A stretch of DNA of 64,000 bases from NCBI GenBank assembly GCA_950097015.1, contig CATNEN010000038.1, positions 3,596,001 to 3,660,000 of the forward strand, written 5' to 3'. Below, in pieces: positions 1 to 19,828 of this stretch. The translations under genes were made by a program, and so were the position numbers. The DNA is from Macrostomum hystrix. Its lineage: Eukaryota; Animalia; Platyhelminthes. Every line of letters starts with the position of its first letter. Position 1 is the first letter of the stretch. Under the pieces are notes generated by a model, which made no database searches, was not told the origin of the DNA, and was given only the letters and a program-made list of their open reading frames with translations.

Positions 1-3000
1 GTCGCGTCTCGGAGTTGTAGACCCTCGAGTCCCCCCCACTCTGATATCTCCCATTTTAAAAGTACTTTTCGTCACCTCACTGAATCTGGTGGTCAAAAGA
101 AGCTGAAAACTCAGATCTGGAAGGAAACAATATCTGTGAACACGGCTGTAAAATTTCAGAGCCCTGACTAGTCGCGTCTCGGAGTTGTAGACCCTCGAGT
201 CCCCCCCACTCTGATATCTCCCATTTTAAAAGTACTTTTCGTCACCTCACTGAATCTGGTGGTCAAAAGAAGCTGAAAACTCAGATCTGGAAGGAAACAT
301 TATCTGTGAACACGGCTGTAAAATTTCAGAGCCCTGACTAGTCGCGTCTCGGAGTTGTAGACCCTCGAGTCCCCCCCACTCTGATATCTCCCATTTTAAA
401 AGTACTTTTCGTCACCTCACTGAATCTGGTGGTCAAAAGAAGCTGAAAACTCAGATCTGGAAGGAAACATTATCTGTGAACACGGCTGTAAAATTTCAGA
501 GCCCTGACTAGTCGCGTCTCGGAGTTGTAGACCCTCGAGTCCCCCCCACTCTGATATCTCCCATTTTAAAAGTACTTTTCGTCACCTCACTGAATCTGGT
601 GGTCAGACGAGGCTAAAAACTCAGATCTGGAAGGAAACATTATCTGTAAACACGGCTGTAAAATTTCAGAGCCCTGACTAGTCGCGTCTCGGAGTTGTAG
701 ACCCTCGAGTCCCCCCCACTCTGATATCTCCCATTTTAAAAGTACTTTTCGTCACCTCACTGAATCTGGTGGTCAGACGAGGCTAAAAACTCAGATCTGG
801 AAGGAAACATTATCTGTAAACACGGCTGTAAAATTTCAGAGCCCTGACTAGTCGCGTCTCGGAGTTGTAGACCCTCGAGTCCCCCCCACTCTGATATCTC
901 CCATTTTAAAAGTACTTTTCGTCACCTCACTGAATCTGGTGGTCAAAAGAAGCTAAAAACTCAGATCTGGAAGGAAACATTATCTGTAAACACGGCTGTA
1001 AAATTTCAGAGCCCTGACTAGTCGCGTCTCGGAGTTGTAGACCCTCGAGTCCCCCCCACTCTGATATCTCCCATTTTAAAAGTACTTTTCGTCACCTCAC
1101 TGAATCTGGTGGTCAAAAGAAGCTGAAAACTCAGATCTGGAAGGAAACATTATCTGTGAACACGGCTGTAAAATTTCAGAGCCCTGACTAGTCGCGTCTC
1201 GGAGTTGTAGACCCTCGAGTCCCCCCCACTCTGATATCTCCCATTTTAAAAGTACTTTTCGTCACCTCACTGAATCTGGTGGTCAGACGAGGCTAAAAAC
1301 TCAGATCTGGAAGGAAACATTATCTGTAAACACGGCTGTAAAATTTCAGAGCCCTGACTAGTCGCGTCTCGGAGTTGTAGACCCTCGAGTCCCCCCCACT
1401 CTGATATCTCCCATTTTAAAAGTACTTTTCGTCACCTCACTGAATCTGGTGGTCAAAAGAAGCTGAAAACTCAGATCTGGAAGGAAACATTATCTGTGAA
1501 CACGGCTGTAAAATTTCAGAGCCCTGACTAGTCGCGTCTCGGAGTTGTAGACCCTCGAGTCCCCCCCACTCTGATATCTCCCATCTTAAAAGTACTTTTC
1601 GTCACCTCACTGAATCTGGTGGTCAGACGAGGCTAAAAACTCAAATCTGGAAGGAAACATTATCTGTAAACACGGCTGTAAAATTTCAGAGCCCTGACTA
1701 GTCGCGTCTCGGAGTTGTAGACCCTCGAGTCCCCCCCACTCTGATATCTCCCATTTTAAAAGTACTTTTCGTCACCTCACTGAATCTGGTGGTCAAAAGA
1801 AGCTGAAAACTCAGATCTGGAAGGAAACATTATCTGTGAACACGGCTGTAAAATTTCAGAGCCCTGACTAGTCGCGTCTCGGAGTTGTAGACCCTCGAGT
1901 CCCCCCCACTCTGATATCTCCCATTTTAAAAGTATTTTTCGTCACCTCACTGAATCTGGTGGTCAGACGAGGCTAAAAACTCAGATCTGGAAGGAAACAT
2001 TATCTGTAAACACGGCTGTAAAATTTCAGAGCCCTGACTAGTCGCGTCTCGGAGTTGTAGACCCTCGAGTCCCCCCCACTCTGATATCTCCCATTTTAAA
2101 AGTACTTTTCGTCACCTCACTGAATCTGGTGGTCAGACGAGGCTAAAAACTCAGATCTGGAAGGAAACATTATCTGTAAACACGGCTGTAAAATTTCAGA
2201 GCCCTGACTAGTCGCGTCTCGGAGTTGTAGACCCTCGAGTCCCCCCCACTCTGATATCTCCCATTTTAAAAGTACTTTTCGTCACCTCACTGAATCTGGT
2301 GGTCAAAAGAAGCTAAAAACTCAGATCTGGAAGGAAACATTATCTGTAAACACGGCTGTAAAATTTCAGAGCCCTGACTAGTCGCGTCTCGGAGTTGTAG
2401 ACCCTCGAGTCCCCCCCACTCTGATATCTCCCATTTTAAAAGTACTTTTCGTCACCTCACTGAATCTGGTGGTCAAAAGAAGCTGAAAACTCAGATCTGG
2501 AAGGAAACATTATCTGTGAACACGGCTGTAAAATTTCAGAGCCCTGACTAGTCGCGTCTCGGAGTTGTAGACCCTCGAGTCCCCCCCACTCTGATATCTC
2601 CCATTTTAAAAGTACTTTTCGTCACCTCACTGAATCTGGTGGTCAGACGAGGCTAAAAACTCAGATCTGGAAGGAAACATTATCTGTAAACACGGCTGTA
2701 AAATTTCAGAGCCCTGACTAGTCGCGTCTCGGAGTTGTAGACCCTCGAGTCCCCCCCACTCTGATATCTCCCATTTTAAAAGTACTTTTCGTCACCTCAC
2801 TGAATCTGGTGGTCAAAAGAAGCTGAAAACTCAGATCTGGAAGGAAACATTATCTGTGAACACGGCTGTAAAATTTCAGAGCCCTGACTAGTCGCGTCTC
2901 GGAGTTGTAGACCCTCGAGTCCCCCCCACTCTGATATCTCCCATCTTAAAAGTACTTTTCGTCACCTCACTGAATCTGGTGGTCAGACGAGGCTAAAAAC

Positions 3001-5672
3001 TCAAATCTGGAAGGAAACATTATCTGTAAACACGGCTGTAAAATTTCAGAGCCCTGACTAGTCGCGTCTCGGAGTTGTAGACCCTCGAGTCCCCCCCACT
3101 CTGATATCTCCCATTTTAAAAGTACTTTTCGTCACCTCACTGAATCTGGTGGTCAAAAGAAGCTGAAAACTCAGATCTGGAAGGAAACATTATCTGTGAA
3201 CACGGCTGTAAAATTTCAGAGCCCTGACTAGTCGCGTCTCGGAGTTGTAGACCCTCGAGTCCCCCCCACTCTGATATCTCCCATTTTAAAAGTATTTTTC
3301 GTCACCTCACTGAATCTGGTGGTCAGACGAGGCTAAAAACTCAGATCTGGAAGGAAACATTATCTGTAAACACGGCTGTAAAATTTCAGAGCCCTGACTA
3401 GTCGCGTCTCGGAGTTGTAGACCCTCGAGTCCCCCCCACTCTGATATCTCCCATTTTAAAAGTACTTTTCGTCACCTCACTGAATCTGGTGGTCAGACGA
3501 GGCTAAAAACTCAGATCTGGAAGGAAACATTATCTGTAAACACGGCTGTAAAATTTCAGAGCCCTGACTAGTCGCGTCTCGGAGTTGTAGACCCTCGAGT
3601 CCCCCCCACTCTGATATCTCCCATTTTAAAAGTACTTTTCGTCACCTCACTGAATCTGGTGGTCAAAAGAAGCTGAAAACTCAGATCTGGAAGGAAACAT
3701 TATCTGTGAACACGGCTGTAAAATTTCAGAGCCCTGACTAGTCGCGTCTCGGAGTTGTAGACCCTCGAGTCCCCCCCACTCTGATATCTCCCATTTTAAA
3801 AGTACTTTTCGTCACCTCACTGAATCTGGTGGTCAGACGAGGCTAAAAACTCAGATCTGGAAGGAAACATTATCTGTGAACACGGCTGTAAAATTTCAGA
3901 GCCCTGACTATTCGCGTCTCGGAGTTGTAGACCCTCGAGTCCCCCCCACTCTGATATCTCCCATTTTAAAAGTACTTTTCGTCACCTCACTGAATCTGGT
4001 GGTCAAAAGAAGCTGAAAACTCAGATCTGGAAGGAAACATTATCTGTGAACACGGCTGTAAAATTTCAGAGCCCTGACTAGTCGCGTCTCGGAGTTGTAG
4101 ACCCTCGAGTCCCCCCCACTCTGATATCTCCCATTTTAAAAGTACTTTTCGTCACCTCACTGAATCTGGTGGTCAGACGAGGCTAAAAACTCAGATCTGG
4201 AAGGAAACATTATCTGTGAACACGGCTGTAAAATTTCAGAGCCCTGACTATTCGCGTCTCGGAGTTGTAGACCCTCGAGTCCCCCCCACTCTGATATCTC
4301 CCATTTTAAAAGTACTTTTCGTCACCTCACTGAATCTGGTGGTCAAAAGAAGCTGAAAACTCAGATCTGGAAGGAAACATTATCTGTAAACACGGCTGTA
4401 AAATTTCAGAGCCCTGACTAGTCGCGTCTCGGAGTTGTAGACCCTCGAGTCCCCCCCACTCTGATATCTCCCATCTTAAAAGTACTTTTCGTCACCTCAC
4501 TGAATCTGGTGGTCAAAAGAAGCTGAAAACTCAGATCTGGAAGGAAACATTATCTGTGAACACGGCTGTAAAATTTCAGAGCCCTGACTAGTCGCGTCTC
4601 GGAGTTGTAGACCCTCGAGTCCCCCCCACTCTGATATCTCCCATTTTAAAAGTACTTTTCGTCACCTCACTGAATCTGGTGGTCAAAAGAAGCTGAAAAC
4701 TCAGATCTGGAAGGAAACAATATCTGTGAACACGGCTGTAAAATTTCAGAGCCCTGACTAGTCGCGTCTCGGAGTTGTAGACCCTCGAGTCCCCCCCACT
4801 CTGATATCTCCCATTTTAAAAGTACTTTTCGTCACCTCACTGAATCTGGTGGTCAAAAGAAGCTGAAAACTCAGATCTGGAAGGAAACATTATCTGTGAA
4901 CACGGCTGTAAAATTTCAGAGCCCTGACTAGTCGCGTCTCGGAGTTGTAGACCCTCGAGTCCCCCCCACTCTGATATCTCCCATTTTAAAAGTACTTTTC
5001 GTCACCTCACTGAATCTGGTGGTCAAAAGAAGCTGAAAACTCAGATCTGGAAGGAAACATTATCTGTGAACACGGCTGTAAAATTTCAGAGCCCTGACTA
5101 GTCGCGTCTCGGAGTTGTAGACCCTCGAGTCCCCCCACTCTGATATCTCCCATTTTAAAAGTACTTTTCGTCACCTCACTGAATCTGGTGGTCAAAAGAA
5201 GCTGAAAACTCAGATCTGGAAGGAAACATTATCTGTGAACACGGCTGTAAAATTTCAGAGCCCTGACTATGCGCGTCTCGGAGTTGTAGACCCTCGAGTC
5301 CCCCCCACTCTGATATCTCCCATTTTAAAAGTACTTTTCGTCACCTCACTGAATCTGGTGGTCAGACGAGGCTAAAAACTCAGATCTGGAAGGAAACATT
5401 ATCTGTAAACACGGCTGTAAAATTTCAGAGCCCTGACTAGTCGCGTCTCGGAGTTGTAGACCCTCGAGTCCCCCCCACTCTGATATCTCCCATTTTAAAA
5501 GTACTTTTCGTCACCTCACTGAATCTGGTGGTCAAAAGAAGCTGAAAACTCAGATCTGGAAGGAAACATTATCTGTGAACACGGCTGTAAAATTTCAGAG
5601 CCCTGACTAGTCGCGTCTCGGAGTTGTAGACCCTCGAGTCCCCCCCACTCTGATATTTCCCATTTTAAAAGT
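1..5672 (+). repeat. 170-bp tandem satellite, left inverted arm (~33 copies visible)
   Basis: The unit gtcgcgtctcggagttgtag...gccctgacta recurs every 170 bp. Two main subtypes: ggtcaaaagaagctg and ggtcagacgaggcta. Confidence 0.98.
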
Positions 5673-6294
5673 GGGCACAACACAACACCCTCACTCTGAG
5701 ATGCCTGCGTATTTTTAGCGTTGAGTTGCGTAACATGTAGGGATGTAATGCGCAATTGGTAATACAGGGTAATATTTTTGCCTTGTCGTGCACATGGGTC
5801 TCAATTTTCGCATGTTGGATCTGATTTTTGCTATTTGTTTTTTTATTATTTGAAGTACTAATGCCCTCTTATGTTTGTCGGCTTTTGAGGCTTTAGCGTT
5901 TGAAGTTGAGTGTTGAGATTTCAAGCCTCGTGTTTTATAGTCTTCGCATTATTAAAAGCCTTCGTATTTTATAGTGACGATTGCGTATCCTCTATTGCAT
6001 TTAGTTCTTAGTGCTTTGTCCTTACGTTTTATCGCTAATGCCTGACAAAATAAGTGTTCTGGGGTGTGTACCGTGCTCTGTTTTACACTAGTAGCTGGAA
6101 TATCCAATCAGCTGCTTTATCTGCTTCTTGCTTGCTATCTCATATCCCTATCCGAACAACCCATGCATAAATTTTCGAGTATAAAGCCTTGAGGAAAGCA
6201 GATTTCAATCGTCTGCTAGTATATTCATATATTTTTAACCATGATTTTCAGTCTTCGCATCATCGCTTTACTTTCAATTTTCTTTATTTGCTAA

Positions 6295-8040
6295 GCAACC
6301 CACAATCGACGCATTTCTTTTTTTGAACTGTCGCCTGAATATTTTGAAGACTATAGTGATGAGTGCCTTGGCAAATCATTTCGCTGTCCCTATGGTGCTT
6401 GCGGGCAAATTCTGAGCAAGCTTTCAGCAAAGAACACTATTGAAAACCGTCGAGTTGTCTGGCTTTATTATCAGCGTAAAATTGTCGGTAAGTCAAAATC
6501 TTCTGTTTCGAAAAGAAAGAAAACTGCTAATCATAAATCTGCTGTGGTAAGATCCACTCGAGTTGCTGTTGCTGCTTCTGTTGTGCCTGGCCGTGGTGCT
6601 GTTGCTGCTTCTGTTGTGCCTGCTCGTCGTGCTGTTGCTGCTTCTGTTGTGCCTGCCCGGGGTGCTGTTGCTGCTTCTGTTGTGCCTGCTCGTCGTGCTG
6701 TTGCTGCTTCTGTTGTGCCTGCCCGGGGTGCTGTTGCTGCTTCTGTTGTGCCTGCTCGTCGTGCTGTTGCTGCTTCTGTTGTGCCTGCCCGGGGTGCTGT
6801 TGCTGCTTCTGTTGTGCCTGCCCGTGGTGCTGTTGCTGCTTCTGTTGTGCCTGCCCGTGGTGCTGTTGCTGCTTCTGTTTTGCCTGCTCGTCGTGCTGTT
6901 GCTGCTTCTGTTGTGCCTGCCCGGGGTGCTGTTGCTGCTTCTGTTGTGCCTGCTCGTCGTGCTGTTGCTGCTTCTGTTGTGCCTGCCCGGGGTGCTGTTG
7001 CTGCCTCTGTTGTGCCTGCTCGTCGTGCTGTTGCTGCTTCTGTTGTGCCTGCCCGGGGTGCTGTTGCTGCTTCTGTTGTGCCTGCCCGTGGTGCTGTTGC
7101 TGCTTCTGTTGTGCCTGCCCGTGGTGCTGTTGCTGCTTCTGTTGTGCCTGCCCGTGGTGCTGTTGCTGCTTCTGTTGTGCCTGCCCGTTGTGCTGTTGCT
7201 GCTTCTGTTGTGCCTGCCCGTGGTGCTGTTGCTGCTTCTGTTGTGCCTGCCCGTCGTGCTGTTGCTGCTTATGTGGGGCCTGCTCATGGAAGTAATGACG
7301 CTTGTGGTGATGATATGAGTGATTCTAGGAGTGGTGATGCTGGGAGTGATGATGCTGGGAGTGAGGATGCTGGGAGTGATGATGGTTGGAGTGATGATGC
7401 TGGGAGTGATGATGGTTGGAGTGATGATGCTGGGAGTGAGGATGCTGGGAGTGATGATGCTGGGAGTGAGGATGCTGGGAGTGATGATGCTGGGAGTGAG
7501 GATGCTGGGAGTGATGATGGTTGGAGTGATGATGCTGGGAGTGATGATTCAGAAGTAAGGGACTGTACTAATGCTGAAGTTGCTGTTGATTTCGAGAGTG
7601 GTGCAAGCGGATCAATAACTAATTTAGTTTTTCATTTTCGAATAGCTTGGAGCCAGTGGAAAAATAACTTTTTTATCAGGCGGGGAGAAAAAATGCATTC
7701 GATATGTCAGAGAACCGCTTTTTGGTGGCTAAACTGCATTCGTGAAAATTATCGACAATATTGCTCTTCGAATGTGGAAGCAAGTAACTGTGTTCTTAAA
7801 TTTAAGAATCGATATCTGAACTTTCCAAATCTCAGAGCACAAAAGCCAAAATATTTCGTAAAACAGGTCGCATTATGCCAGCATCCCGCATGCAAAATAG
7901 TACACGATTTTAGAATTATAGATTTTCCAACTGAAAATGAGCCTGTGGTGGTAGTTGTTAATTCTAAAGGTGAGAAGAATCATAATCATCCAACGATGTC
8001 TAGAATGACGCCATTAGAATCAGAAAGGATAGCAAATTGA
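6295..8040 (+). CDS. N-terminal part of the MULE/NOF-like transposase, with a zinc-finger-like C-x4-C...H-x-H region; start and exon structure uncertain
   Basis: The frame is open from 6295 to TGA 8040 (the ORF track starts at GTG 6544). The C-terminal part CVLKFKNRY...ALCQHPAC...GEKNHNH resembles the N-terminal zinc-finger region of Mutator-type transposases and runs into the next ORF via a frameshift near 8033-8040. Confidence 0.6.
   Translation, partial: ATHNRRISFFELSPEYFEDYSDECLGKSFRCPYGACGQILSKLSAKNTIENRRVVWLYYQRKIVGKSKSSVSKRKKTANHKSAVVRSTRVAVAASVVPGRGAVAASVVPARRAVAASVVPARGAVAASVVPARRAVAASVVPARGAVAASVVPARRAVAASVVPARGAVAASVVPARGAVAASVVPARGAVAASVLPARRAVAASVVPARGAVAASVVPARRAVAASVVPARGAVAASVVPARRAVAASVVPARGAVAASVVPARGAVAASVVPARGAVAASVVPARGAVAASVVPARCAVAASVVPARGAVAASVVPARRAVAAYVGPAHGSNDACGDDMSDSRSGDAGSDDAGSEDAGSDDGWSDDAGSDDGWSDDAGSEDAGSDDAGSEDAGSDDAGSEDAGSDDGWSDDAGSDDSEVRDCTNAEVAVDFESGASGSITNLVFHFRIAWSQWKNNFFIRRGEKMHSICQRTAFWWLNCIRENYRQYCSSNVEASNCVLKFKNRYLNFPNLRAQKPKYFVKQVALCQHPACKIVHDFRIIDFPTENEPVVVVVNSKGEKNHNHPTMSRMTPLESERIAN
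6563..7280 (+). repeat. 33-bp minisatellite (~21 copies; GAVAASVVPAR in the ORF frame)
   Basis: ggtgctgttgctgcttctgttgtgcctgcccgt repeated in tandem. Confidence 0.95.
7330..7548 (+). repeat. 15-bp minisatellite encoding acidic DAGSD/E repeats
   Basis: gatgctgggagtgat repeated ~14 times. Confidence 0.92.
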
Positions 8041-10366
8041 AACTGAAGCACCAACTGATGTACATGATAGACTACTCTCGGAAATGACAGATAAAGAGAT
8101 AAAGGAAAATGACTTTTCTCGATCAAAAAATTTGGATGCCATTCGGCGGGTAAACGCGAAGCGGTTGGTTGCCGCAGAAGAACGGCTGCATAAAAATGTT
8201 GAAGTCGAAATTGCTGCTTTGCAACGAATACTGAGCGAAACAGACACAGAGAGTAAGAGTATACGCGGATACATTCAAGCTGTGTCTCGCCATCCATTTC
8301 ATGTACATCTGTACCTCGAAAGACAGCTTAGACTTGTTACAAGTAGGCCGCAGTGTGTTTTACATCTAGATGCCACTGGAAGCATTTTCAAGAGAATGAA
8401 TTTCGCAGGTAGCCAAATATTTCTTTACTCGCTGACAATGCCCTCCGATAACGGTCAGACGCGTGGTGTGCCTGTGGCCGAAATGATAACAAGTGAGCAT
8501 AGGACCAAATCAATCCAACACTTTTTGTTTTCTGTCCGCGCAGATTTGGGCACACTAGCAAGCAGTACTATTATGTCGCATGACTATTTACCCGCTGTCA
8601 TCGTCACGGACTTCTCTTGGGCTATGTTACACTCGGTATGCCAGTCATTTGGCACCAGCTTAGAGCAATACCTTATTGATACGCATTGTGCGTTACGCAT
8701 GGGGAAACAAATCAAGTACACGATTCCATTCATTTGCACAAATCACGTAATCCGTGCGTTCATTAATGGCATACAACTAAAGTCTAAAACTGCGGAAGGT
8801 AAAGCTATGCGGGAATTATTTATTAGCGCATTTGTCTTTTTATTACATCAGGAGACTTTTGAAGCGTTTGAAACTACCTTGAGTCTCACTGTAGATACAT
8901 TTTTAGGGCAGCGAGATCCGAAAGAATTAAGATCAGCGATTAACAATTGGGAAACTGAGCCCGTGGACGAAGAATATTCGCTCTACAACGACGATGAAAT
9001 AAATAACGATAAGGAAGAGCAGGCCGAAAGTTCTCGATTTGCTTCTCTGCGCGAAGGCTCTCCGTACATTTTTCTTTTCAAGTCCCGACAGGCAAGTATT
9101 GATGCAACCGACGAGCCAGCCGGGCCATTTAAAAGCTATTACTCACCAAAACTGCTGGTTTACTTGCTGAAGCACTGGTGTAGTTTAGCTCCATTGTTCT
9201 GCCATTTCATCGGGAGTATCAAGAGCTTCAGAAAGAATAAAAGTTGGTTTTCAAACTCTTACGTAGAATCGTACTTTTCAGACGTTAAATCTCGAAAAAC
9301 AAGGTTCGGCAAGGCTTCCAGGGTGAACGTGTCGAGTTTTATTTGCGGACGGTTAAAATATTTAAAAACAAGATTAACAGCTTTCGACATAATCAACAAA
9401 GTAGGGAAAGCAACGTTATCTGGAAGGAAGAGAAAGCACGAAGATATTTCCTTTTCTCGCGAGGAGTGGCGAAGGGCCGAGCGGGTTAGTCGTTCAAAGT
9501 ACAAGCGACAGAGAACAGAATCAGCGACAAAGAATAGAAAGCAGCAAGGCACAGCAGAACGGGAACAGGTGTGGTGCACCCGCGCTGGAGACTTCCTAAC
9601 TGAGTTTGATAGAGAATCATTGGAACCCGGAAAGTGGCTTTCTGTCGGAATAGTAAATTCATTCATACATCTACTTTGCGTATGCAACCCAAGCAGCAAA
9701 GCGGGCCACCTACCATCCAGCTTCTTTAGCTGCATTCGCAAAGGAGATTCGAGCGCTGCGATTGACATGCTAAGAGCGACAGTTTCAAACAAATGCACCC
9801 GTTTAATCTGTCCGATTCTTCAGAACGACCACTTCTACTTAGTCTATATTGACACAACACGCAAAGAACTAGCTGTCCTAGACACAAAACCTATCTCAGA
9901 TAAGTCGATACCAAAACATTTTATAAAACTATGGCAAAACCTAATCAAAAGCACCACCAGTATTCGCGAAGACATGCCAGAAATTTTAGGTACGTATAAA
10001 AATAAATCAATGTTGAGATCATTGCAGTTTGATGGTCATAGCTGTGGTGTATTTGTCTGTCTGTACGCGAAAGTTCTAGTAACATCCGTTGATACCGAGT
10101 TCCGAGCTTTGTGCTTTCCAACAACGGAGGGATTTCTTAACAGAGCTCGAATCTGCATCTGGAAAGACTTGGAAAGAGAAAATGAAGAATCCACCAACTC
10201 GTGCGTTCGCTGTCATGAAGCTGAACCCAGTGCGACTGGAACTTGGCTGCAATGTGATCTTTGTGATTCATGGCTGCACCATGAGTGTGCATCGAAAGAT
10301 ATGCACCAGCGCCACGCGTCCAACGGCTACGTCTGCTGCTGTGCCGAGTACGCAGCAACGCGATAG
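8033..10366 (+). CDS. MULE/NOF-type DDE transposase fused to a Ulp1-like (C48) cysteine protease and a C-terminal PHD finger
   Basis: Transposase motifs: LHLDATGS (D1), IVTDFSWAM (D2), ICTNH (CxxH), SNSYVESYF (E). Basic NLS-like GRKRKH. Protease motifs: WLSVGIVNSF, NDHFYL (His), VLDT (Asp), LQFDGHSCGVF (Gln/Cys). PHD: CVRC...WLQCDLCDSWLHHEC...YVCCC. The frame is open from 8033; first ATG at 8084. Confidence 0.88.
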   Translation, partial: QIETEAPTDVHDRLLSEMTDKEIKENDFSRSKNLDAIRRVNAKRLVAAEERLHKNVEVEIAALQRILSETDTESKSIRGYIQAVSRHPFHVHLYLERQLRLVTSRPQCVLHLDATGSIFKRMNFAGSQIFLYSLTMPSDNGQTRGVPVAEMITSEHRTKSIQHFLFSVRADLGTLASSTIMSHDYLPAVIVTDFSWAMLHSVCQSFGTSLEQYLIDTHCALRMGKQIKYTIPFICTNHVIRAFINGIQLKSKTAEGKAMRELFISAFVFLLHQETFEAFETTLSLTVDTFLGQRDPKELRSAINNWETEPVDEEYSLYNDDEINNDKEEQAESSRFASLREGSPYIFLFKSRQASIDATDEPAGPFKSYYSPKLLVYLLKHWCSLAPLFCHFIGSIKSFRKNKSWFSNSYVESYFSDVKSRKTRFGKASRVNVSSFICGRLKYLKTRLTAFDIINKVGKATLSGRKRKHEDISFSREEWRRAERVSRSKYKRQRTESATKNRKQQGTAEREQVWCTRAGDFLTEFDRESLEPGKWLSVGIVNSFIHLLCVCNPSSKAGHLPSSFFSCIRKGDSSAAIDMLRATVSNKCTRLICPILQNDHFYLVYIDTTRKELAVLDTKPISDKSIPKHFIKLWQNLIKSTTSIREDMPEILGTYKNKSMLRSLQFDGHSCGVFVCLYAKVLVTSVDTEFRALCFPTTEGFLNRARICIWKDLERENEESTNSCVRCHEAEPSATGTWLQCDLCDSWLHHECASKDMHQRHASNGYVCCCAEYAATR

Positions 10367-10661
10367 CTGGATGGATGCACCAAGAAGTGCAGCGAAAAAA
10401 TGTACTCACACTAATTACTAAAAGCTACTTGCTTAAAAATAAAATGTCAATTCTGTAGTTTTTGTTATAACAACAAGTCAATTCTGTAAACAATTATGGC
10501 ACCGCTTTGCAATGTAAAACTGTGAATAATCTAAGCTGCAAAATATTATAAGACATATGTAAAATAGTGGCCTTTGTGTGACACAGAAACACTAATACGA
10601 ACAAAAACCTTAAAAAATAAACAAAAATCTTCTAACACCGAACTTAAAATATATTAAAGAC

Positions 10662-10724
10662 TTTGTGAAAAACTCTGCCTTAGCCAGTCCCAAGCCTGGT
10701 TTCAAAAAGAGGAGGGCTCACGAA
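10662..10724 (+). ncRNA. Twister ribozyme (P1 type, no P3 stem)
   Basis: tttgtga-aaaa-CTC-TGCC-tta-gCCAG-TCCCAAGC-CTGG-tttcaaaaa-GAG-GAGGG-c-tcacgaa fits the twister layout. Stems: P1 tttgtga/tcacgaa, P2 CTC/GAG, P4 CCAG/CTGG. Pseudoknots: CCC:GGG and GC:GC. Confidence 0.82.
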
Positions 10725-10825
10725 AAATATACCAAAAGCAAATCTTAAATTATATTCAGTAAAATCAAACAAAAAAACTACAAAAAATACAGACTACAAA
10801 AACAATAGCTCCTTCGAAACCTCAT

Positions 10826-13800
10826 TTTTCAGCTTCTTTTGACCACCAGATTCAGTGAGGTGACGAAAAGTACTTTTAAAATGGGAGATATCAGAGTGGG
10901 GGGGACTCGAGGGTCTACAACTCCGAGACGCGAATAGTCAGGGCTCTGAAATTTTACAGCCGTGTTCACAGATAATGTTTCCTTCCAGATCTGAGTTTTT
11001 AGCTTCTTTTGACCACCAGATTCAGTGAGGTGACGAAAAGTACTTTTAAAATGGGAGATATCAGAGTGGGGGGGGACTCGAGGGTCTACAACTCCGAGAC
11101 GCGACTAGTCAGGGCTCTGAAATTTTACAGCCGTGTTTACAGATAATGTTTCCTTCCAGATCTGAGTTTTTAGCCTCGTCTGACCACCAGATTCAGTGAG
11201 GTGACGAAAAGTACTTTTAAAATGGGAGATATCAGAGTGGGGGGGACTCGAGGGTCTACAACTCCGAGACGCGAATAGTCAGGGCTCTGAAATTTTACAG
11301 CCGTGTTCACAGATAATGTTTCCTTCCAGATCTGAGTTTTCATCTTCTTTTGACCACCAGATTCAGTGAGGTGACGAAAAGTACTTTTAAAATGGGAGAT
11401 ATCAGAGTGGGGGGGACTCGAGGGTCTACAACTCCGAGACGCGACTAGTCAGGGCTCTGAAATTTTACAGCCGTGTTCACAGATAATGTTTCCTTCCAGA
11501 TCTGAGTTTTCAGCCTCGTCTGACCACCAGATTCAGTGAGGTGACGAAAAGTACTTTTAAAATGGGAGATATCAGAGTGGGGGGGACTCGAGGGTCTACA
11601 ACTCCGAGACGCGACTAGTCAGGGCTCTGAAATTTTACAGCCGTGTTCACAGATAATGTTTCCTTCCAGATCTGAGTTTTCAGCTTCTTTTGACCACCAG
11701 ATTCAGTGAGGTGACGAAAAGTACTTTTAAAATGGGAGATATCAGAGTGGGGGGGACTCGAGGGTCTACAACTCCGAGACGCGACTAGTCAGGGCTCTGA
11801 AATTTTACAGCCGTGTTCACAGATAATGTTTCCTTCCAGATCTGAGTTTTCAGCTTCTTTTGACCACCAGATTCAGTGAGGTGACGAAAAGTACTTTTAA
11901 AATGGGAGATATCAGATTGGGGGGGACTCGAGGGTCTACAACTCCGAGACGCGACTAGTCAGGGCTCTGAAATTTTACAGCCGTGTTCACAGATAATGTT
12001 TCCTTCCAGATCTGAGTTTTTAGCCTCGTCTGACCACCAGATTCAGTGAGGTGACGAAAAGTACTTTTAAAATGGGAGATATCAGAGTGGGGGGGGACTC
12101 GAGGGTCTACAACTCCGAGACGCGACTAGTCAGGGCTCTGAAATTTTACAGCCGTGTTCACAGATAATGTTTCCTTCCAGATCTGAGTTTTCAGCTTCTT
12201 TTGACCACCAGATTCAGTGAGGTGACGAAAAGTACTTTTAAAATGGGAGATATCAGAGTGGGGGGGACTCGAGGGTCTACAACTCCGAGACGCGACTAGT
12301 CAGGGCTCTGAAATTTTACAGCCGTGTTTACAGATAATGTTTCCTTCCAGATCTGAGTTTTTAGCTTCTTTTGACCACCAGATTCAGTGAGGTGACGAAA
12401 AGTACTTTTAAAATGGGAGATATCAGAGTGGGGGGGACTCGAGGGTCTACAACTCCGAGACGCGACTAGTCAGGGCTCTGAAATCTTACAGCCGTGTTCA
12501 CAGATAATGTTTCCTTCCAGATCTGAGTTTTCAGCTTCTTTTGACCACCAGATTCAGTGAGGTGACGAAAAGTACTTTTAAAATGGGAGATATCAGAGTG
12601 GGGGGGACTCGAGGGTCTACAACTCCGAGACGCGACTAGTCAGGGCTCTGAAATTTTACAGCCGTGTTCACAGATAATGTTTCCTTCCAGATCTGAGTTT
12701 TCAGCTTCTTTTGACCACCAGATTCAGTGAGGTGACGAAAAGTACTTTTAAAATGGGAGATATCAGATTGGGGGGGACTCGAGGGTCTACAACTCCGAGA
12801 CGCGACTAGTCAGGGCTCTGAAATTTTACAGCCGTGTTCACAGATAATGTTTCCTTCCAGATCTGAGTTTTTAGCCTCGTCTGACCACCAGATTCAGTGA
12901 GGTGACGAAAAGTACTTTTAAAATGGGAGATATCAGAGTGGGGGGGACTCGAGGGTCTACAACTCCGAGACGCGACTAGTCAGGGCTCTGAAATTTTACA
13001 GCCGTGTTCACAGATAATGTTTCCTTCCAGATCTGAGTTTTCAGCTTCTTTTGACCACCAGATTCAGTGAGGTGACGAAAAGTACTTTTAAAATGGGAGA
13101 TATCAGAGTGGGGGGGACTCGAGGGTCTACAACTCCGAGACGCGAATAGTCAGGGCTCTGAAATTTTACAGCCGTGTTCACAGATAATGTTTCCTTCCAG
13201 ATCTGAGTTTTCATCTTCTTTTGACCACCAGATTCAGTGAGGTGACGAAAAGTACTTTTAAAATGGGAGATATCAGAGTGGGGGGGACTCGAGGGTCTAC
13301 AACTCCGAGACGCGACTAGTCAGGGCTCTGAAATTTTACAGCCGTGTTCACAGATAATGTTTCCTTCCAGATCTGAGTTTTCAGCTTCTTTTGACCACCA
13401 GATTCAGTGAGGTGACGAAAAGTACTTTTAAAATGGGAGATATCAGAGTGGGGGGGACTCGAGGGTCTACAACTCCGAGACGCGACTAGTCAGGGCTCTG
13501 AAATTTTACAGCCGTGTTCACAGATAATGTTTCCTTCCAGATCTGAGTTTTCAGCTTCTTTTGACCACCGGATTCAGTGAGGTGACGAAAAGTACTTTTA
13601 AAATGGGAGATATCAGAGTGGGGGGGACTCGAGGGTCTACAACTCCGAGACGCGACTAGTCAGGGCTCTGAAATCTTACAGCCGTGTTCACAGATAATGT
13701 TTCCTTCCAGATCTGAGTTTTCAGCTTCTTTTGACCACCAGATTCAGTGAGGTGACGAAAAGTACTTTTAAAATGGGAGATATCAGATTGGGGGGGACTC

Positions 13801-16800
13801 GAGGGTCTACAACTCCGAGACGCGACTAGTCAGGGCTCTGAAATTTTACAGCCGTGTTTACAGATAATGTTTCCTTCCAGATCTGAGTTTTTAGCCTCGT
13901 CTGACCACCAGATTCAGTGAGGTGACGAAAAGTACTTTTAAAATGGGAGATATCAGAGTGGGGGGGACTCGAGGGTCTACAACTCCGAGACGCGAATAGT
14001 CAGGGCTCTGAAATTTTACAGCCGTGTTCACAGATAATGTTTCCTTCCAGATCTGAGTTTTCATCTTCTTTTGACCACCAGATTCAGTGAGGTGACGAAA
14101 AGTACTTTTAAAATGGGAGATATCAGAGTGGGGGGGACTCGAGGGTCTACAACTCCGAGACGCGACTAGTCAGGGCTCTGAAATTTTACAGCCGTGTTTA
14201 CAGATAATGTTTCCTTCCAGATCTGAGTTTTTAGCTTCTTTTGACCACCAGATTCAGTGAGGTGACGAAAAGTACTTTTAAAATGGGAGATATCAGAGTG
14301 GGGGGGACTCGAGGGTCTACAACTCCGAGACGCGACTAGTCAGGGCTCTGAAATCTTACAGCCGTGTTCACAGATAATGTTTCCTTCCAGATCTGAGTTT
14401 TCAGCTTCTTTTGACCACCAGATTCAGTGAGGTGACGAAAAGTACTTTTAAAATGGGAGATATCAGAGTGGGGGGGACTCGAGGGTCTACAACTCCGAGA
14501 CGCGACTAGTCAGGGCTCTGAAATTTTACAGCCGTGTTCACAGATAATGTTTCCTTCCAGATCTGAGTTTTCAGCTTCTTTTGACCACCAGATTCAGTGA
14601 GGTGACGAAAAGTACTTTTAAAATGGGAGATATCAGATTGGGGGGGACTCGAGGGTCTACAACTCCGAGACGCGACTAGTCAGGGCTCTGAAATTTTACA
14701 GCCGTGTTCACAGATAATGTTTCCTTCCAGATCTGAGTTTTTAGCCTCGTCTGACCACCAGATTCAGTGAGGTGACGAAAAGTACTTTTAAAATGGGAGA
14801 TATCAGAGTGGGGGGGACTCGAGGGTCTACAACTCCGAGACGCGACTAGTCAGGGCTCTGAAATTTTACAGCCGTGTTCACAGATAATGTTTCCTTCCAG
14901 ATCTGAGTTTTCAGCTTCTTTTGACCACCAGATTCAGTGAGGTGACGAAAAGTACTTTTAAAATGGGAGATATCAGAGTGGGGGGGACTCGAGGGTCTAC
15001 AACTCCGAGACGCGACTAGTCAGGGCTCTGAAATTTTACAGCCGTGTTCACAGATAATGTTTCCTTCCAGATCTGAGTTTTCAGCTTCTTTTGACCACCA
15101 GATTCAGTGAGGTGACGAAAAGTACTTTTAAAATGGGAGATATCAGATTGGGGGGGACTCGAGGGTCTACAACTCCGAGACGCGACTAGTCAGGGCTCTG
15201 AAATTTTACAGCCGTGTTCACAGATAATGTTTCCTTCCAGATCTGAGTTTTTAGCCTCGTCTGACCACCAGATTCAGTGAGGTGACGAAAAGTACTTTTA
15301 AAATGGGAGATATCAGAGTGGGGGGGACTCGAGGGTCTACAACTCCGAGACGCGACTAGTCAGGGCTCTGAAATTTTACAGCCGTGTTCACAGATAATGT
15401 TTCCTTCCAGATCTGAGTTTTCAGCTTCTTTTGACCACCGGATTCAGTGAGGTGACGAAAAGTACTTTTAAAATGGGAGATATCAGAGTGGGGGGGACTC
15501 GAGGGTCTACAACTCCGAGACGCGACTAGTCAGGGCTCTGAAATCTTACAGCCGTGTTCACAGATAATGTTTCCTTCCAGATCTGAGTTTTCAGCTTCTT
15601 TTGACCACCAGATTCAGTGAGGTGACGAAAAGTACTTTTAAAATGGGAGATATCAGAGTGGGGGGGACTCGAGGGTCTACAACTCCGAGACGCGACTAGT
15701 CAGGGCTCTGAAATTTTACAGCCGTGTTTACAGATAATGTTTCCTTCCAGATCTGAGTTTTTAGCCTCGTCTGACCACCAGATTCAGTGAGGTGACGAAA
15801 AGTACTTTTAAAATGGGAGATATCAGAGTGGGGGGGACTCGAGGGTCTACAACTCCGAGACGCGAATAGTCAGGGCTCTGAAATTTTACAGCCGTGTTCA
15901 CAGATAATGTTTCCTTCCAGATCTGAGTTTTCATCTTCTTTTGACCACCAGATTCAGTGAGGTGACGAAAAGTACTTTTAAAATGGGAGATATCAGAGTG
16001 GGGGGGACTCGAGGGTCTACAACTCCGAGACGCGACTAGTCAGGGCTCTGAAATTTTACAGCCGTGTTCACAGATAATGTTTCCTTCCAGATCTGAGTTT
16101 TCAGCCTCGTCTGACCACCAGATTCAGTGAGGTGACGAAAAGTACTTTTAAAATGGGAGATATCAGAGTGGGGGGGACTCGAGGGTCTACAACTCCGAGA
16201 CGCGACTAGTCAGGGCTCTGAAATTTTACAGCCGTGTTCACAGATAATGTTTCCTTCCAGATCTGAGTTTTCAGCTTCTTTTGACCACCAGATTCAGTGA
16301 GGTGACGAAAAGTACTTTTAAAATGGGAGATATCAGAGTGGGGGGGACTCGAGGGTCTACAACTCCGAGACGCGACTAGTCAGGGCTCTGAAATTTTACA
16401 GCCGTGTTCACAGATAATGTTTCCTTCCAGATCTGAGTTTTCAGCTTCTTTTGACCACCAGATTCAGTGAGGTGACGAAAAGTACTTTTAAAATGGGAGA
16501 TATCAGATTGGGGGGGACTCGAGGGTCTACAACTCCGAGACGCGACTAGTCAGGGCTCTGAAATTTTACAGCCGTGTTCACAGATAATGTTTCCTTCCAG
16601 ATCTGAGTTTTTAGCCTCGTCTGACCACCAGATTCAGTGAGGTGACGAAAAGTACTTTTAAAATGGGAGATATCAGAGTGGGGGGGACTCGAGGGTCTAC
16701 AACTCCGAGACGCGACTAGTCAGGGCTCTGAAATTTTACAGCCGTGTTTACAGATAATGTTTCCTTCCAGATCTGAGTTTTCAGCTTCTTTTGACCACCA

Positions 16801-19800
16801 GATTCAGTGAGGTGACGAAAAGTACTTTTAAAATGGGAGATATCAGAGTGGGGGGGACTCGAGGGTCTACAACTCCGAGACGCGACTAGTCAGGGCTCTG
16901 AAATCTTACAGCCGTGTTCACAGATAATGTTTCCTTCCAGATCTGAGTTTTCAGCTTCTTTTGACCACCAGATTCAGTGAGGTGACGAAAAGTACTTTTA
17001 AAATGGGAGATATCAGAGTGGGGGGGACTCGAGGGTCTACAACTCCGAGACGCGACTAGTCAGGGCTCTGAAATTTTACAGCCGTGTTCACAGATAATGT
17101 TTCCTTCCAGATCTGAGTTTTCAGCTTCTTTTGACCACCAGATTCAGTGAGGTGACGAAAAGTACTTTTAAAATGGGAGATATCAGATTGGGGGGGACTC
17201 GAGGGTCTACAACTCCGAGACGCGACTAGTCAGGGCTCTGAAATTTTACAGCCGTGTTCACAGATAATGTTTCCTTCCAGATCTGAGTTTTTAGCCTCGT
17301 CTGACCACCAGATTCAGTGAGGTGACGAAAAGTACTTTTAAAATGGGAGATATCAGAGTGGGGGGGACTCGAGGGTCTACAACTCCGAGACGCGACTAGT
17401 CAGGGCTCTGAAATTTTACAGCCGTGTTCACAGATAATGTTTCCTTCCAGATCTGAGTTTTCAGCTTCTTTTGACCACCAGATTCAGTGAGGTGACGAAA
17501 AGTACTTTTAAAATGGGAGATATCAGAGTGGGGGGGACTCGAGGGTCTACAACTCCGAGACGCGAATAGTCAGGGCTCTGAAATTTTACAGCCGTGTTCA
17601 CAGATAATGTTTCCTTCCAGATCTGAGTTTTCATCTTCTTTTGACCACCAGATTCAGTGAGGTGACGAAAAGTACTTTTAAAATGGGAGATATCAGAGTG
17701 GGGGGGACTCGAGGGTCTACAACTCCGAGACGCGACTAGTCAGGGCTCTGAAATTTTACAGCCGTGTTCACAGATAATGTTTCCTTCCAGATCTGAGTTT
17801 TCAGCTTCTTTTGACCACCAGATTCAGTGAGGTGACGAAAAGTACTTTTAAAATGGGAGATATCAGAGTGGGGGGGACTCGAGGGTCTACAACTCCGAGA
17901 CGCGACTAGTCAGGGCTCTGAAATTTTACAGCCGTGTTCACAGATAATGTTTCCTTCCAGATCTGAGTTTTCAGCTTCTTTTGACCACCGGATTCAGTGA
18001 GGTGACGAAAAGTACTTTTAAAATGGGAGATATCAGAGTGGGGGGGACTCGAGGGTCTACAACTCCGAGACGCGACTAGTCAGGGCTCTGAAATCTTACA
18101 GCCGTGTTCACAGATAATGTTTCCTTCCAGATCTGAGTTTTCAGCTTCTTTTGACCACCAGATTCAGTGAGGTGACGAAAAGTACTTTTAAAATGGGAGA
18201 TATCAGATTGGGGGGGACTCGAGGGTCTACAACTCCGAGACGCGACTAGTCAGGGCTCTGAAATTTTACAGCCGTGTTTACAGATAATGTTTCCTTCCAG
18301 ATCTGAGTTTTTAGCCTCGTCTGACCACCAGATTCAGTGAGGTGACGAAAAGTACTTTTAAAATGGGAGATATCAGAGTGGGGGGGACTCGAGGGTCTAC
18401 AACTCCGAGACGCGAATAGTCAGGGCTCTGAAATTTTACAGCCGTGTTCACAGATAATGTTTCCTTCCAGATCTGAGTTTTCATCTTCTTTTGACCACCA
18501 GATTCAGTGAGGTGACGAAAAGTACTTTTAAAATGGGAGATATCAGAGTGGGGGGGACTCGAGGGTCTACAACTCCGAGACGCGACTAGTCAGGGCTCTG
18601 AAATTTTACAGCCGTGTTTACAGATAATGTTTCCTTCCAGATCTGAGTTTTTAGCTTCTTTTGACCACCAGATTCAGTGAGGTGACGAAAAGTACTTTTA
18701 AAATGGGAGATATCAGAGTGGGGGGGACTCGAGGGTCTACAACTCCGAGACGCGAATAGTCAGGGCTCTGAAATTTTACAGCCGTGTTCACAGATAATGT
18801 TTCCTTCCAGATCTGAGTTTTCATCTTCTTTTGACCACCAGATTCAGTGAGGTGACGAAAAGTACTTTTAAAATGGGAGATATCAGAGTGGGGGGGACTC
18901 GAGGGTCTACAACTCCGAGACGCGACTAGTCAGGGCTCTGAAATTTTACAGCCGTGTTCACAGATAATGTTTCCTTCCAGATCTGAGTTTTCAGCCTCGT
19001 CTGACCACCAGATTCAGTGAGGTGACGAAAAGTACTTTTAAAATGGGAGATATCAGAGTGGGGGGGACTCGAGGGTCTACAACTCCGAGACGCGACTAGT
19101 CAGGGCTCTGAAATTTTACAGCCGTGTTCACAGATAATGTTTCCTTCCAGATCTGAGTTTTCAGCTTCTTTTGACCACCAGATTCAGTGAGGTGACGAAA
19201 AGTACTTTTAAAATGGGAGATATCAGAGTGGGGGGGACTCGAGGGTCTACAACTCCGAGACGCGACTAGTCAGGGCTCTGAAATTTTACAGCCGTGTTCA
19301 CAGATAATGTTTCCTTCCAGATCTGAGTTTTCAGCTTCTTTTGACCACCAGATTCAGTGAGGTGACGAAAAGTACTTTTAAAATGGGAGATATCAGATTG
19401 GGGGGGACTCGAGGGTCTACAACTCCGAGACGCGACTAGTCAGGGCTCTGAAATTTTACAGCCGTGTTCACAGATAATGTTTCCTTCCAGATCTGAGTTT
19501 TTAGCCTCGTCTGACCACCAGATTCAGTGAGGTGACGAAAAGTACTTTTAAAATGGGAGATATCAGAGTGGGGGGGACTCGAGGGTCTACAACTCCGAGA
19601 CGCGACTAGTCAGGGCTCTGAAATTTTACAGCCGTGTTCACAGATAATGTTTCCTTCCAGATCTGAGTTTTCAGCTTCTTTTGACCACCAGATTCAGTGA
19701 GGTGACGAAAAGTACTTTTAAAATGGGAGATATCAGAGTGGGGGGGACTCGAGGGTCTACAACTCCGAGACGCGACTAGTCAGGGCTCTGAAATTTTACA

Positions 19801-19828
19801 GCCGTGTTCACAGATAATGTTTCCTTCC
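10826..19828 (-). repeat. 170-bp tandem satellite, right inverted arm (~53 copies)
   Basis: Reverse complement of the left-arm unit, with a 170-bp period. Confidence 0.98.

Follow-up and report, generated by a model that had tools for sequence, protein, structure and literature searches.

A NOF/Foldback-like DNA transposon in the flatworm Macrostomum hystrix carries, after the stop codon of its transposase and shortly before its right inverted arm, a twister ribozyme motif that is conserved, has a fold supported by covariation and holds a fixed place in the element. The transposon was found in a stretch of 64,000 nucleotides (contig CATNEN010000038.1, positions 3,596,001 to 3,660,000 of the forward strand), here called the window, whose first letter is position 1 in the coordinates given below. 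The twister can be regarded as part of the element because the genomic copies, the linkage, the divergent lineages and the diversity within the family agree; on sequence grounds, it appears to be a selectively maintained, built-in module of these NOF/Foldback-type elements and not a stray insert. With respect to its task, we consider it fairly probable that this maintained module co-transcriptionally severs the coding RNA from the RNA of the arm.

The host element

The element, whose left arm is cut by the start of the window, is composed of the following parts:

1..5672, minus strand: left arm, a 170-bp satellite array inverted relative to the right arm
6544..8040, plus strand: upstream repetitive ORF, in a frame different from that of the ORF listed next and probably encoding the N-terminal part of its protein
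8084..10366, plus strand: ORF of 760 aa for a putative NOF/Foldback-like (Mutator-type) transposase; it has a PHD-like finger and, C-terminally, a Ulp1/C48-like protease
10653..10658, plus strand: ATTAAA hexamer, 3 nt before P1 and 12 nt before the predicted scissile bond, kept in 14 of the 15 copies of the family
10662..10724, plus strand: twister ribozyme motif of type P1, made up of P1, P2, P4 and the pseudoknots T1 and T2 and lacking the auxiliary P3
10797..19828, plus strand: right arm, with inverted homology from 10797 and a 170-bp array at 10826-19828 (52.9 copies)

The Atlas cluster nearest to the ORF at 8084-10366 is the "120.7 kDa protein in NOF-FB transposable element" (0.91), and residues 1-500 of this ORF are nearest to MULE transposase clusters (0.85); both similarities are leads and not proof. 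A homologue that is 39% identical passes Pfam for Ulp1/C48 and PHD. The profile search retrieved 5612 homologues of the transposase from public data, 879 of them at E<=1e-30, and the residues D96, D176, C218/H221 and E395 are invariant across 42 homologues, giving a D..D..CxxH..E pattern. The Pfam MULE search matched neither the window ORF nor 41 homologues, in which only PHD and C48 were flagged; Pfam is without a model that recognises the catalytic core of this transposase family. A metagenome scan made for comparison across species yielded six short contigs, none extending into the 3' UTR and none with a twister match. The upstream ORF (6544-8040) is probably the N-terminus of the transposase, since sister copies are single open frames of 1373-1748 aa, and there seems to be a frame break or an intron at 8040-8084, between the two ORFs of the window. 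The open frame of the window copy measures 777 aa, and the copies open over 1373-1748 aa have C-termini that are 98-100% identical to it. One public run, guessed to be RNA, contains a contig of 232 nt that matches 10066-10297, in the 3' part of the ORF, with 3 differences; this is too little to call expression.

Inverted terminal arms made of tandem repeats are present in the window element, and the same layout is found in two other lineages of this genome (B and D, see below). Drosophila FB-NOF/Foldback elements resemble the window element in that long tandem-repeat inverted arms surround a large NOF-like protein in which C48 and PHD domains occur; foldback elements whose arms consist of tandem repeats are for the most part assigned to the Mutator superfamily, and the arms of Foldback elements seed satellite DNA (PMC4079207). 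The 184-bp arm repeats of family D are 100% identical within and between arms (L053:1912-3850 and 9173-10000), which would imply, as far as sequence identity tells, a very recent amplification or a strong homogenisation.

The stop codon of the transposase ends at 10366, 296 nt upstream of the motif, where an earlier reading of the window made from the sequence alone (the sequence-only reading) had estimated about 300 bp. Its estimate of about 100 bp between the motif and the right arm also agrees with the measured start of the satellite array (10826) and of the inverted homology (10797). The same holds for its remark that the flanks show no retroelement sequence. The NOF-like ORF is the only gene of the middle domain of the element and the ribozyme motif follows its stop codon; the twister is the sole Rfam match in 5500-11000, where no second Rfam family was detected; and reverse transcriptase, LTR or SINE bodies are absent beside the ribozyme, which is not placed at a 5' end as retroelement ribozymes are. 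No mirror-image twister was found near the left arm.

The twister motif and its fold

The sequence-only reading had placed a full twister core at 10662-10724 on the sense strand, and the parts of the motif map exactly onto these bounds:

10662-10669, plus strand: 5' strand of P1, UUUGUGAA, which pairs with CUCACGAA at 10717-10724 through seven standard pairs and an A-C closing mismatch
10670-10671, plus strand: N-1 (A10670) and the conserved A+1 (A10671)
10670..10671, plus strand: predicted scissile bond, from the cmscan alignment to the consensus UAA
10673-10676 with 10708-10711, plus strand: P2, CUCU/AGAG
10677-10679, plus strand: GCC (L2)
10684-10687 with 10696-10699, plus strand: P4, CCAG/CUGG
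10688-10695, plus strand: L4 loop, UCCCAAGC, pairing CCC:GGG with 10714-10716 (T1) and GC:GC with 10677-10678 (T2)
10712-10716, plus strand: GAGGG (3' strand of L1)

The core nucleotides, namely A at +1, GCC, UCCCAAGC and GAGGG, are complete in the window motif and are also invariant or nearly so across the twister families of the genome. In the E-value scan of Rfam with cmscan, twister-P1 (RF03160) was the sole match, located at 10666-10720 on the plus strand with 40.5 bits and spanning the full model (1-68). Its E-value rises from 1.3e-7 for 401 nt to 1.7e-6 for 5.5 kb and, over the whole genome of 220 Mb, to 1.6e-5. The sequence-only reading had proposed the Rfam covariance model as a check; the E-value match stands, and the score lies below the gathering threshold, at which cmscan returned zero matches in the window. 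The gathering score of RF03160 is 67.2 bits, a curation cut-off and no property of the twister class. The motif falls short of it because the auxiliary P3 stem is missing; the P3 stem-loop is the only large gap of the motif relative to the RF03160 model, and it is described as auxiliary in twisters (CHiTA study, PMC11662667). Two models trained on this genome score 10662-10724 at 87.5 bits (R1) and 91.7 bits (R2). The fold energy of the motif is unremarkable when only nested pairs are considered (z -1.31), a value that is uninformative because plain MFE folding ignores the pseudoknots. Taken by its sequence features, 10662-10724 is best read as a genuine twister-class motif whose cleavage is predicted.

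The window motif has in common with the type-P1 twisters of Rfam the core nucleotides, the stems P1, P2 and P4, both pseudoknots and a predicted cut at the 5' edge. Unlike them, it has no P3, carries A instead of U at -1 and closes P1 with an A-C mismatch. The AAA cleavage triplet and the A-C pair are as the sequence-only reading had claimed, and its compensatory changes in P2 and P4 are borne out too, since the differences from the Rfam consensus are compensatory in the cmscan alignment. Of the two bases at the cleavage site, conservation is lower for the one 5' of the cut (PMC5408937); twisters widely tolerate changes at position -1, and P1 imperfections do not lower cleavage, P1 itself being dispensable (PMC11662667). 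Because of this tolerance, the AAA triplet and the A-C pair should not abolish activity, and both deviations should be compatible with it. The AAA triplet is common to lineages A, B and B', and it is therefore an old retained state and no recent decay. The closing pair of P1 is AU, GU, UA or GC in other twister families. Twister cleavage leaves 2',3'-cyclic phosphate and 5'-OH ends, which is the established chemistry of the class (PMC5408937); for the window motif, a 2',3'-cyclic phosphate is predicted at the 3' end of the upstream product and a 5'-OH at the start of the downstream one.

There are approximately 66 twister-like sites in the genome, belonging to several sequence families and all lacking P3. 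The highest score of any of them against RF03160 is 51.5 bits, and the Rfam gathering score overlooks all twisters of this genome because the P3 stem is absent throughout. A control search with the reversed pattern gave 15 matches, against 42 for the real one. For the analysis of the fold, 19 distinct twisters were aligned with the model R2, which had been built from eight gap-free rows (A3), giving the final alignment A4. A MAFFT alignment (A1) and the set R1/A2 were put aside, since family C was shifted by one column in them.

Among these 19 twisters, and counting the pseudoknots, 90.6% of the pair cells hold standard pairs, compared with 35-51% when the partners are slid by 1-3 columns. In 13 pairs both sides change (3-9 in the slid control), and the covariation score is 0.357, against 0.04-0.11 for the slid partners and with none of 500 shuffles as high; these values come from few and related lineages and from an alignment fitted to the structure model. 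P2 is paired in 100% of cases with 2 pairs altered on both sides, P4 in 98.7% with 3 such pairs, and P1 in 78.3% with 8. Complementarity amounts to 98.1% in T1 and 94.7% in T2, whose pairs hardly vary and show conservation, not covariation. Family D illustrates how the stems change: its P2 is CUUC/GAAG, one copy has CUUC/AAAG with a C-A mismatch, and another copy has the compensated form CUUU/AAAG. This last copy also differs in P4, where UCGG/CCGA is replaced by UCUG/CAGA, a swap of a G-C pair for a U-A pair.

The 5' strand of P1 with its preceding nucleotide, CUUUGUGA (10661-10669 in the window; also L016, L017 and L035), does not differ between lineages A, B, B' and D, and its 3' partner strand varies. 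As CUUUGUGA would form the 3' end of the cut coding RNA, it may be constrained beyond pairing.

Twisters were also observed in other surroundings. A separate element of 2.1 kb, with short inverted ends and at least 10 near-identical copies (L049:7215-9307, on G000:C3; L056; L024-L033), contains a PHD-finger ORF and a FLYWCH-finger ORF. Its twister has the canonical UAA, and AATAAA at its 3' edge; the second ORF ends about 150 nt before it, and the right end of the element is about 210 nt away. With it, there is a second kind of TIR element in which a twister lies close to the right end. Another family, with the L4 variant UCCCCAGC and the canonical UAA (L019, L050, L057 and L040; G000:C5:1647010, C39:39006, C38:18170211), is flanked by tandem repeats of 20, 40 and 344 bp and has no NOF-like ORF within 9 kb. 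A host kinase gene, 71% identical to a Macrostomum lignano protein, is located near the copy L050, on a different contig.

Conservation and position in the element

The UTR segment has 15 copies, all in one element family and all preceded by the ORF and followed by the satellite. Where the C-terminus of the transposase is kept in the genome (22 places), a twister is found 0.2-0.8 kb downstream on the same strand in 20. There are two exceptions, both judged from match tables: one copy is rearranged, with its UTR fragment at a distance of 9.4 kb, and the other (C39:883561) is degenerate. In total, 24 of the 66 genomic twister matches belong to these NOF-like elements. The linkage extends to lineages B, B' and D, whose proteins are 53%, about 40% and 39% identical to the window transposase, and whose twisters are 91%, 89% and 73% identical to the window copy. 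Between A, B, B' and D the flanks (150 nt upstream and 68 nt downstream) have decayed to the identity of shuffled sequences. The sequence-only reading had suggested looking at related elements, with absence of the motif from sister copies counting against it; sister and distant lineages keep the twister at the same position.

Diversity within family A follows the same pattern. The twister and the 3' end of the ORF both differ by 2.0-2.8% between pairs of copies, and the values for the UTR are 7.5-9.5% upstream of the twister and 17-30% downstream.

A copy of family D (G000:C29:6958890-6959714) has an open frame of 1251 aa but lacks a nearby twister. Of its twister-proximal UTR segment, the first 61 nt recur 9.4 kb downstream (C29:6969144-6969204), pointing to an insertion or rearrangement immediately ahead of the ribozyme in the copy at C29:6958890.

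The order arm, ORF, twister, arm is repeated in lineages A, B and D despite their different repeat units:

Lineage A: arm unit 170 bp; twister to right arm about 70 nt; stop codon to twister about 300 nt
Lineage B: arm unit 171 bp; twister to right arm about 75 nt; stop codon to twister about 320 nt
Lineage D: arm unit 184 bp; twister to right arm about 150 nt; stop codon to twister about 710 nt
Lineage B': no arm found; stop codon to twister about 220 nt

The distance between twister and arm is held at 70-150 nt in three lineages, whereas that between stop codon and twister ranges from about 0.2 to 0.7 kb. With respect to polyadenylation hexamers, the AATAAA sites that the sequence-only reading had pointed out upstream of the motif are indeed present in the UTR, at 10438 and 10616, but they are not conserved in the sister sublineage, unlike the ATTAAA at 10653, which we infer to be a poly(A) signal.

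Function, alternatives and meaning

The cleavage in vivo and its purpose, which we infer, would take the following course. RNA polymerase would continue beyond the stop codon of the transposase, and the nascent RNA would adopt the P1-P2-P4 fold with the pseudoknots T1 and T2. Self-cleavage would then occur between A10670 and A10671, 12 nt past the conserved AUUAAA and about 70 nt short of the right arm. The coding RNA would retain just the 9-nt 5' strand of P1, and the ribozyme body, the spacer and the arm would leave with the downstream fragment. In this way, the transposase RNA would be free of right-arm sequence and would not form long dsRNA with left-arm RNA, whether in cis or of other copies, and read-through transcripts would stop at a set position. 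5'-3' exonucleases act poorly on a 5'-OH end; therefore, cleavage need not bring termination. This arm-severing reading is favoured because the distance to the arm is kept and the distance to the stop codon is not, and the data are consistent with cleavage keeping the inverted arm out of read-through RNA. A stronger version, in which the twister would be an obligatory RNA insulator of foldback transposons whose cut before the right arm would spare a gene flanked by kilobases of perfectly inverted satellite from giant-hairpin mRNA and RNA silencing, is put forward tentatively, as a possibility about which we have considerable doubt.

Two other functional readings are less favoured than the severing of the arm. 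The twister could be a self-limiting attenuator located upstream of the real polyadenylation site, in which case most tails would be removed and transposase output would be low. This seems to us unlikely, although ribozymes in 3' UTRs alter expression in reporter constructs (PMC6765202), in the unrelated family C element the 3' edge of the twister carries AATAAA, and the motif is invariably on the sense strand within the UTR. With a functional poly(A) site located beyond the twister, cleavage would take the tail off and reduce expression. However, family A has no AATAAA or ATTAAA between the twister and the arm, this stretch being the least conserved of the UTR, and the conserved hexamer is upstream of the cut; attenuation also leaves unexplained why it is the arm distance, rather than the stop distance, that is kept. 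Alternatively, cleavage could be a processing signal that sets the 5' end of a non-coding RNA, composed of the folded twister, spacer and satellite, to be used by the element or by the host. Since the cut of a type-P1 twister is at its 5' edge, the downstream RNA keeps the whole fold, which matches the ribozymes at retroelement 5' ends (PMC8501958), and the motif lies 70-150 nt from the arm in the three lineages. Nevertheless, no part of the UTR varies more than the 70-nt spacer, and the arm units differ by lineage (170 vs 184 bp), and we hold such an RNA product to be quite improbable.

The fold and linkage data disfavour the two readings that grant the motif no function in the element. Other twister families do occur in other elements of the genome, as would be expected if the twister of another mobile RNA had landed once in an ancestral UTR and were merely carried along. 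Such a neutral passenger is nonetheless very improbable: the flanks have decayed to shuffle-level identity and the motif has not, the changes in the stems are compensatory, the diversity of the twister equals that of the coding sequence, and the flanks are without retroelement or SINE-like sequence. A chance likeness to the twister consensus in A-rich DNA, to which the score under the Rfam gathering threshold and the weak fold z-score might point, is effectively refuted by the E-value over the 220-Mb genome, by the excess of real over reversed-pattern matches, and by the covariation and conservation of the motif.

The motif is a further member of the known twister class, and what is new is its conserved place in a foldback DNA transposon. 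A full-text literature search found no report linking twisters with DNA transposons, nor was any ribozyme reported in FB-NOF/Foldback elements in the literature searched; to our knowledge, none has been described in Drosophila FB-NOF or in other Foldback elements. The statement of the sequence-only reading that eukaryotic twisters mostly sit in non-LTR retroelements was too broad, as the literature consulted gives one case, Perere-3 of Schistosoma mansoni. Twister variants occur at the 5' end of this element, and no biological function of twisters is otherwise confirmed (PMC8501958). Like the window motif, the Perere-3 twister is of this class and built into a flatworm mobile element, and it acts on the element's own transcript, as the window motif is predicted to do. 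However, Perere-3 is a retroelement, with its RNA as the intermediate of transposition and its ribozyme at the 5' end, while the window element is a cut-and-paste DNA transposon with the motif at the 3' end of the transposase transcript, beside an inverted arm. HDV-like ribozymes are known in R2 and L1Tc, and hammerheads in Penelope-like elements, SINEs and retrozymes (PMC6765202). These are also small self-cleaving ribozymes and conserved parts of mobile elements, but they are of other classes, belong to retroelements or RNA circles, and release or circularise the RNA of the element; a DNA transposon needs neither.

Few small ribozymes are as fast or as widespread as twisters. A twister held at a fixed place in a DNA transposon down to 39% protein identity provides a testable job for the class, and in a flatworm group with a transgenic model the question of what twisters are for becomes a concrete experiment. 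With respect to detection, twisters without P3 are overlooked at the Rfam gathering score. The finding also bears on how foldback elements, whose arms seed satellite DNA, express a gene located between long inverted repeats. If the insulator reading is true, a twister would for the first time have a defined biological role in a DNA transposon, and a mobile element would have a ribozyme-based means to avoid silencing itself.
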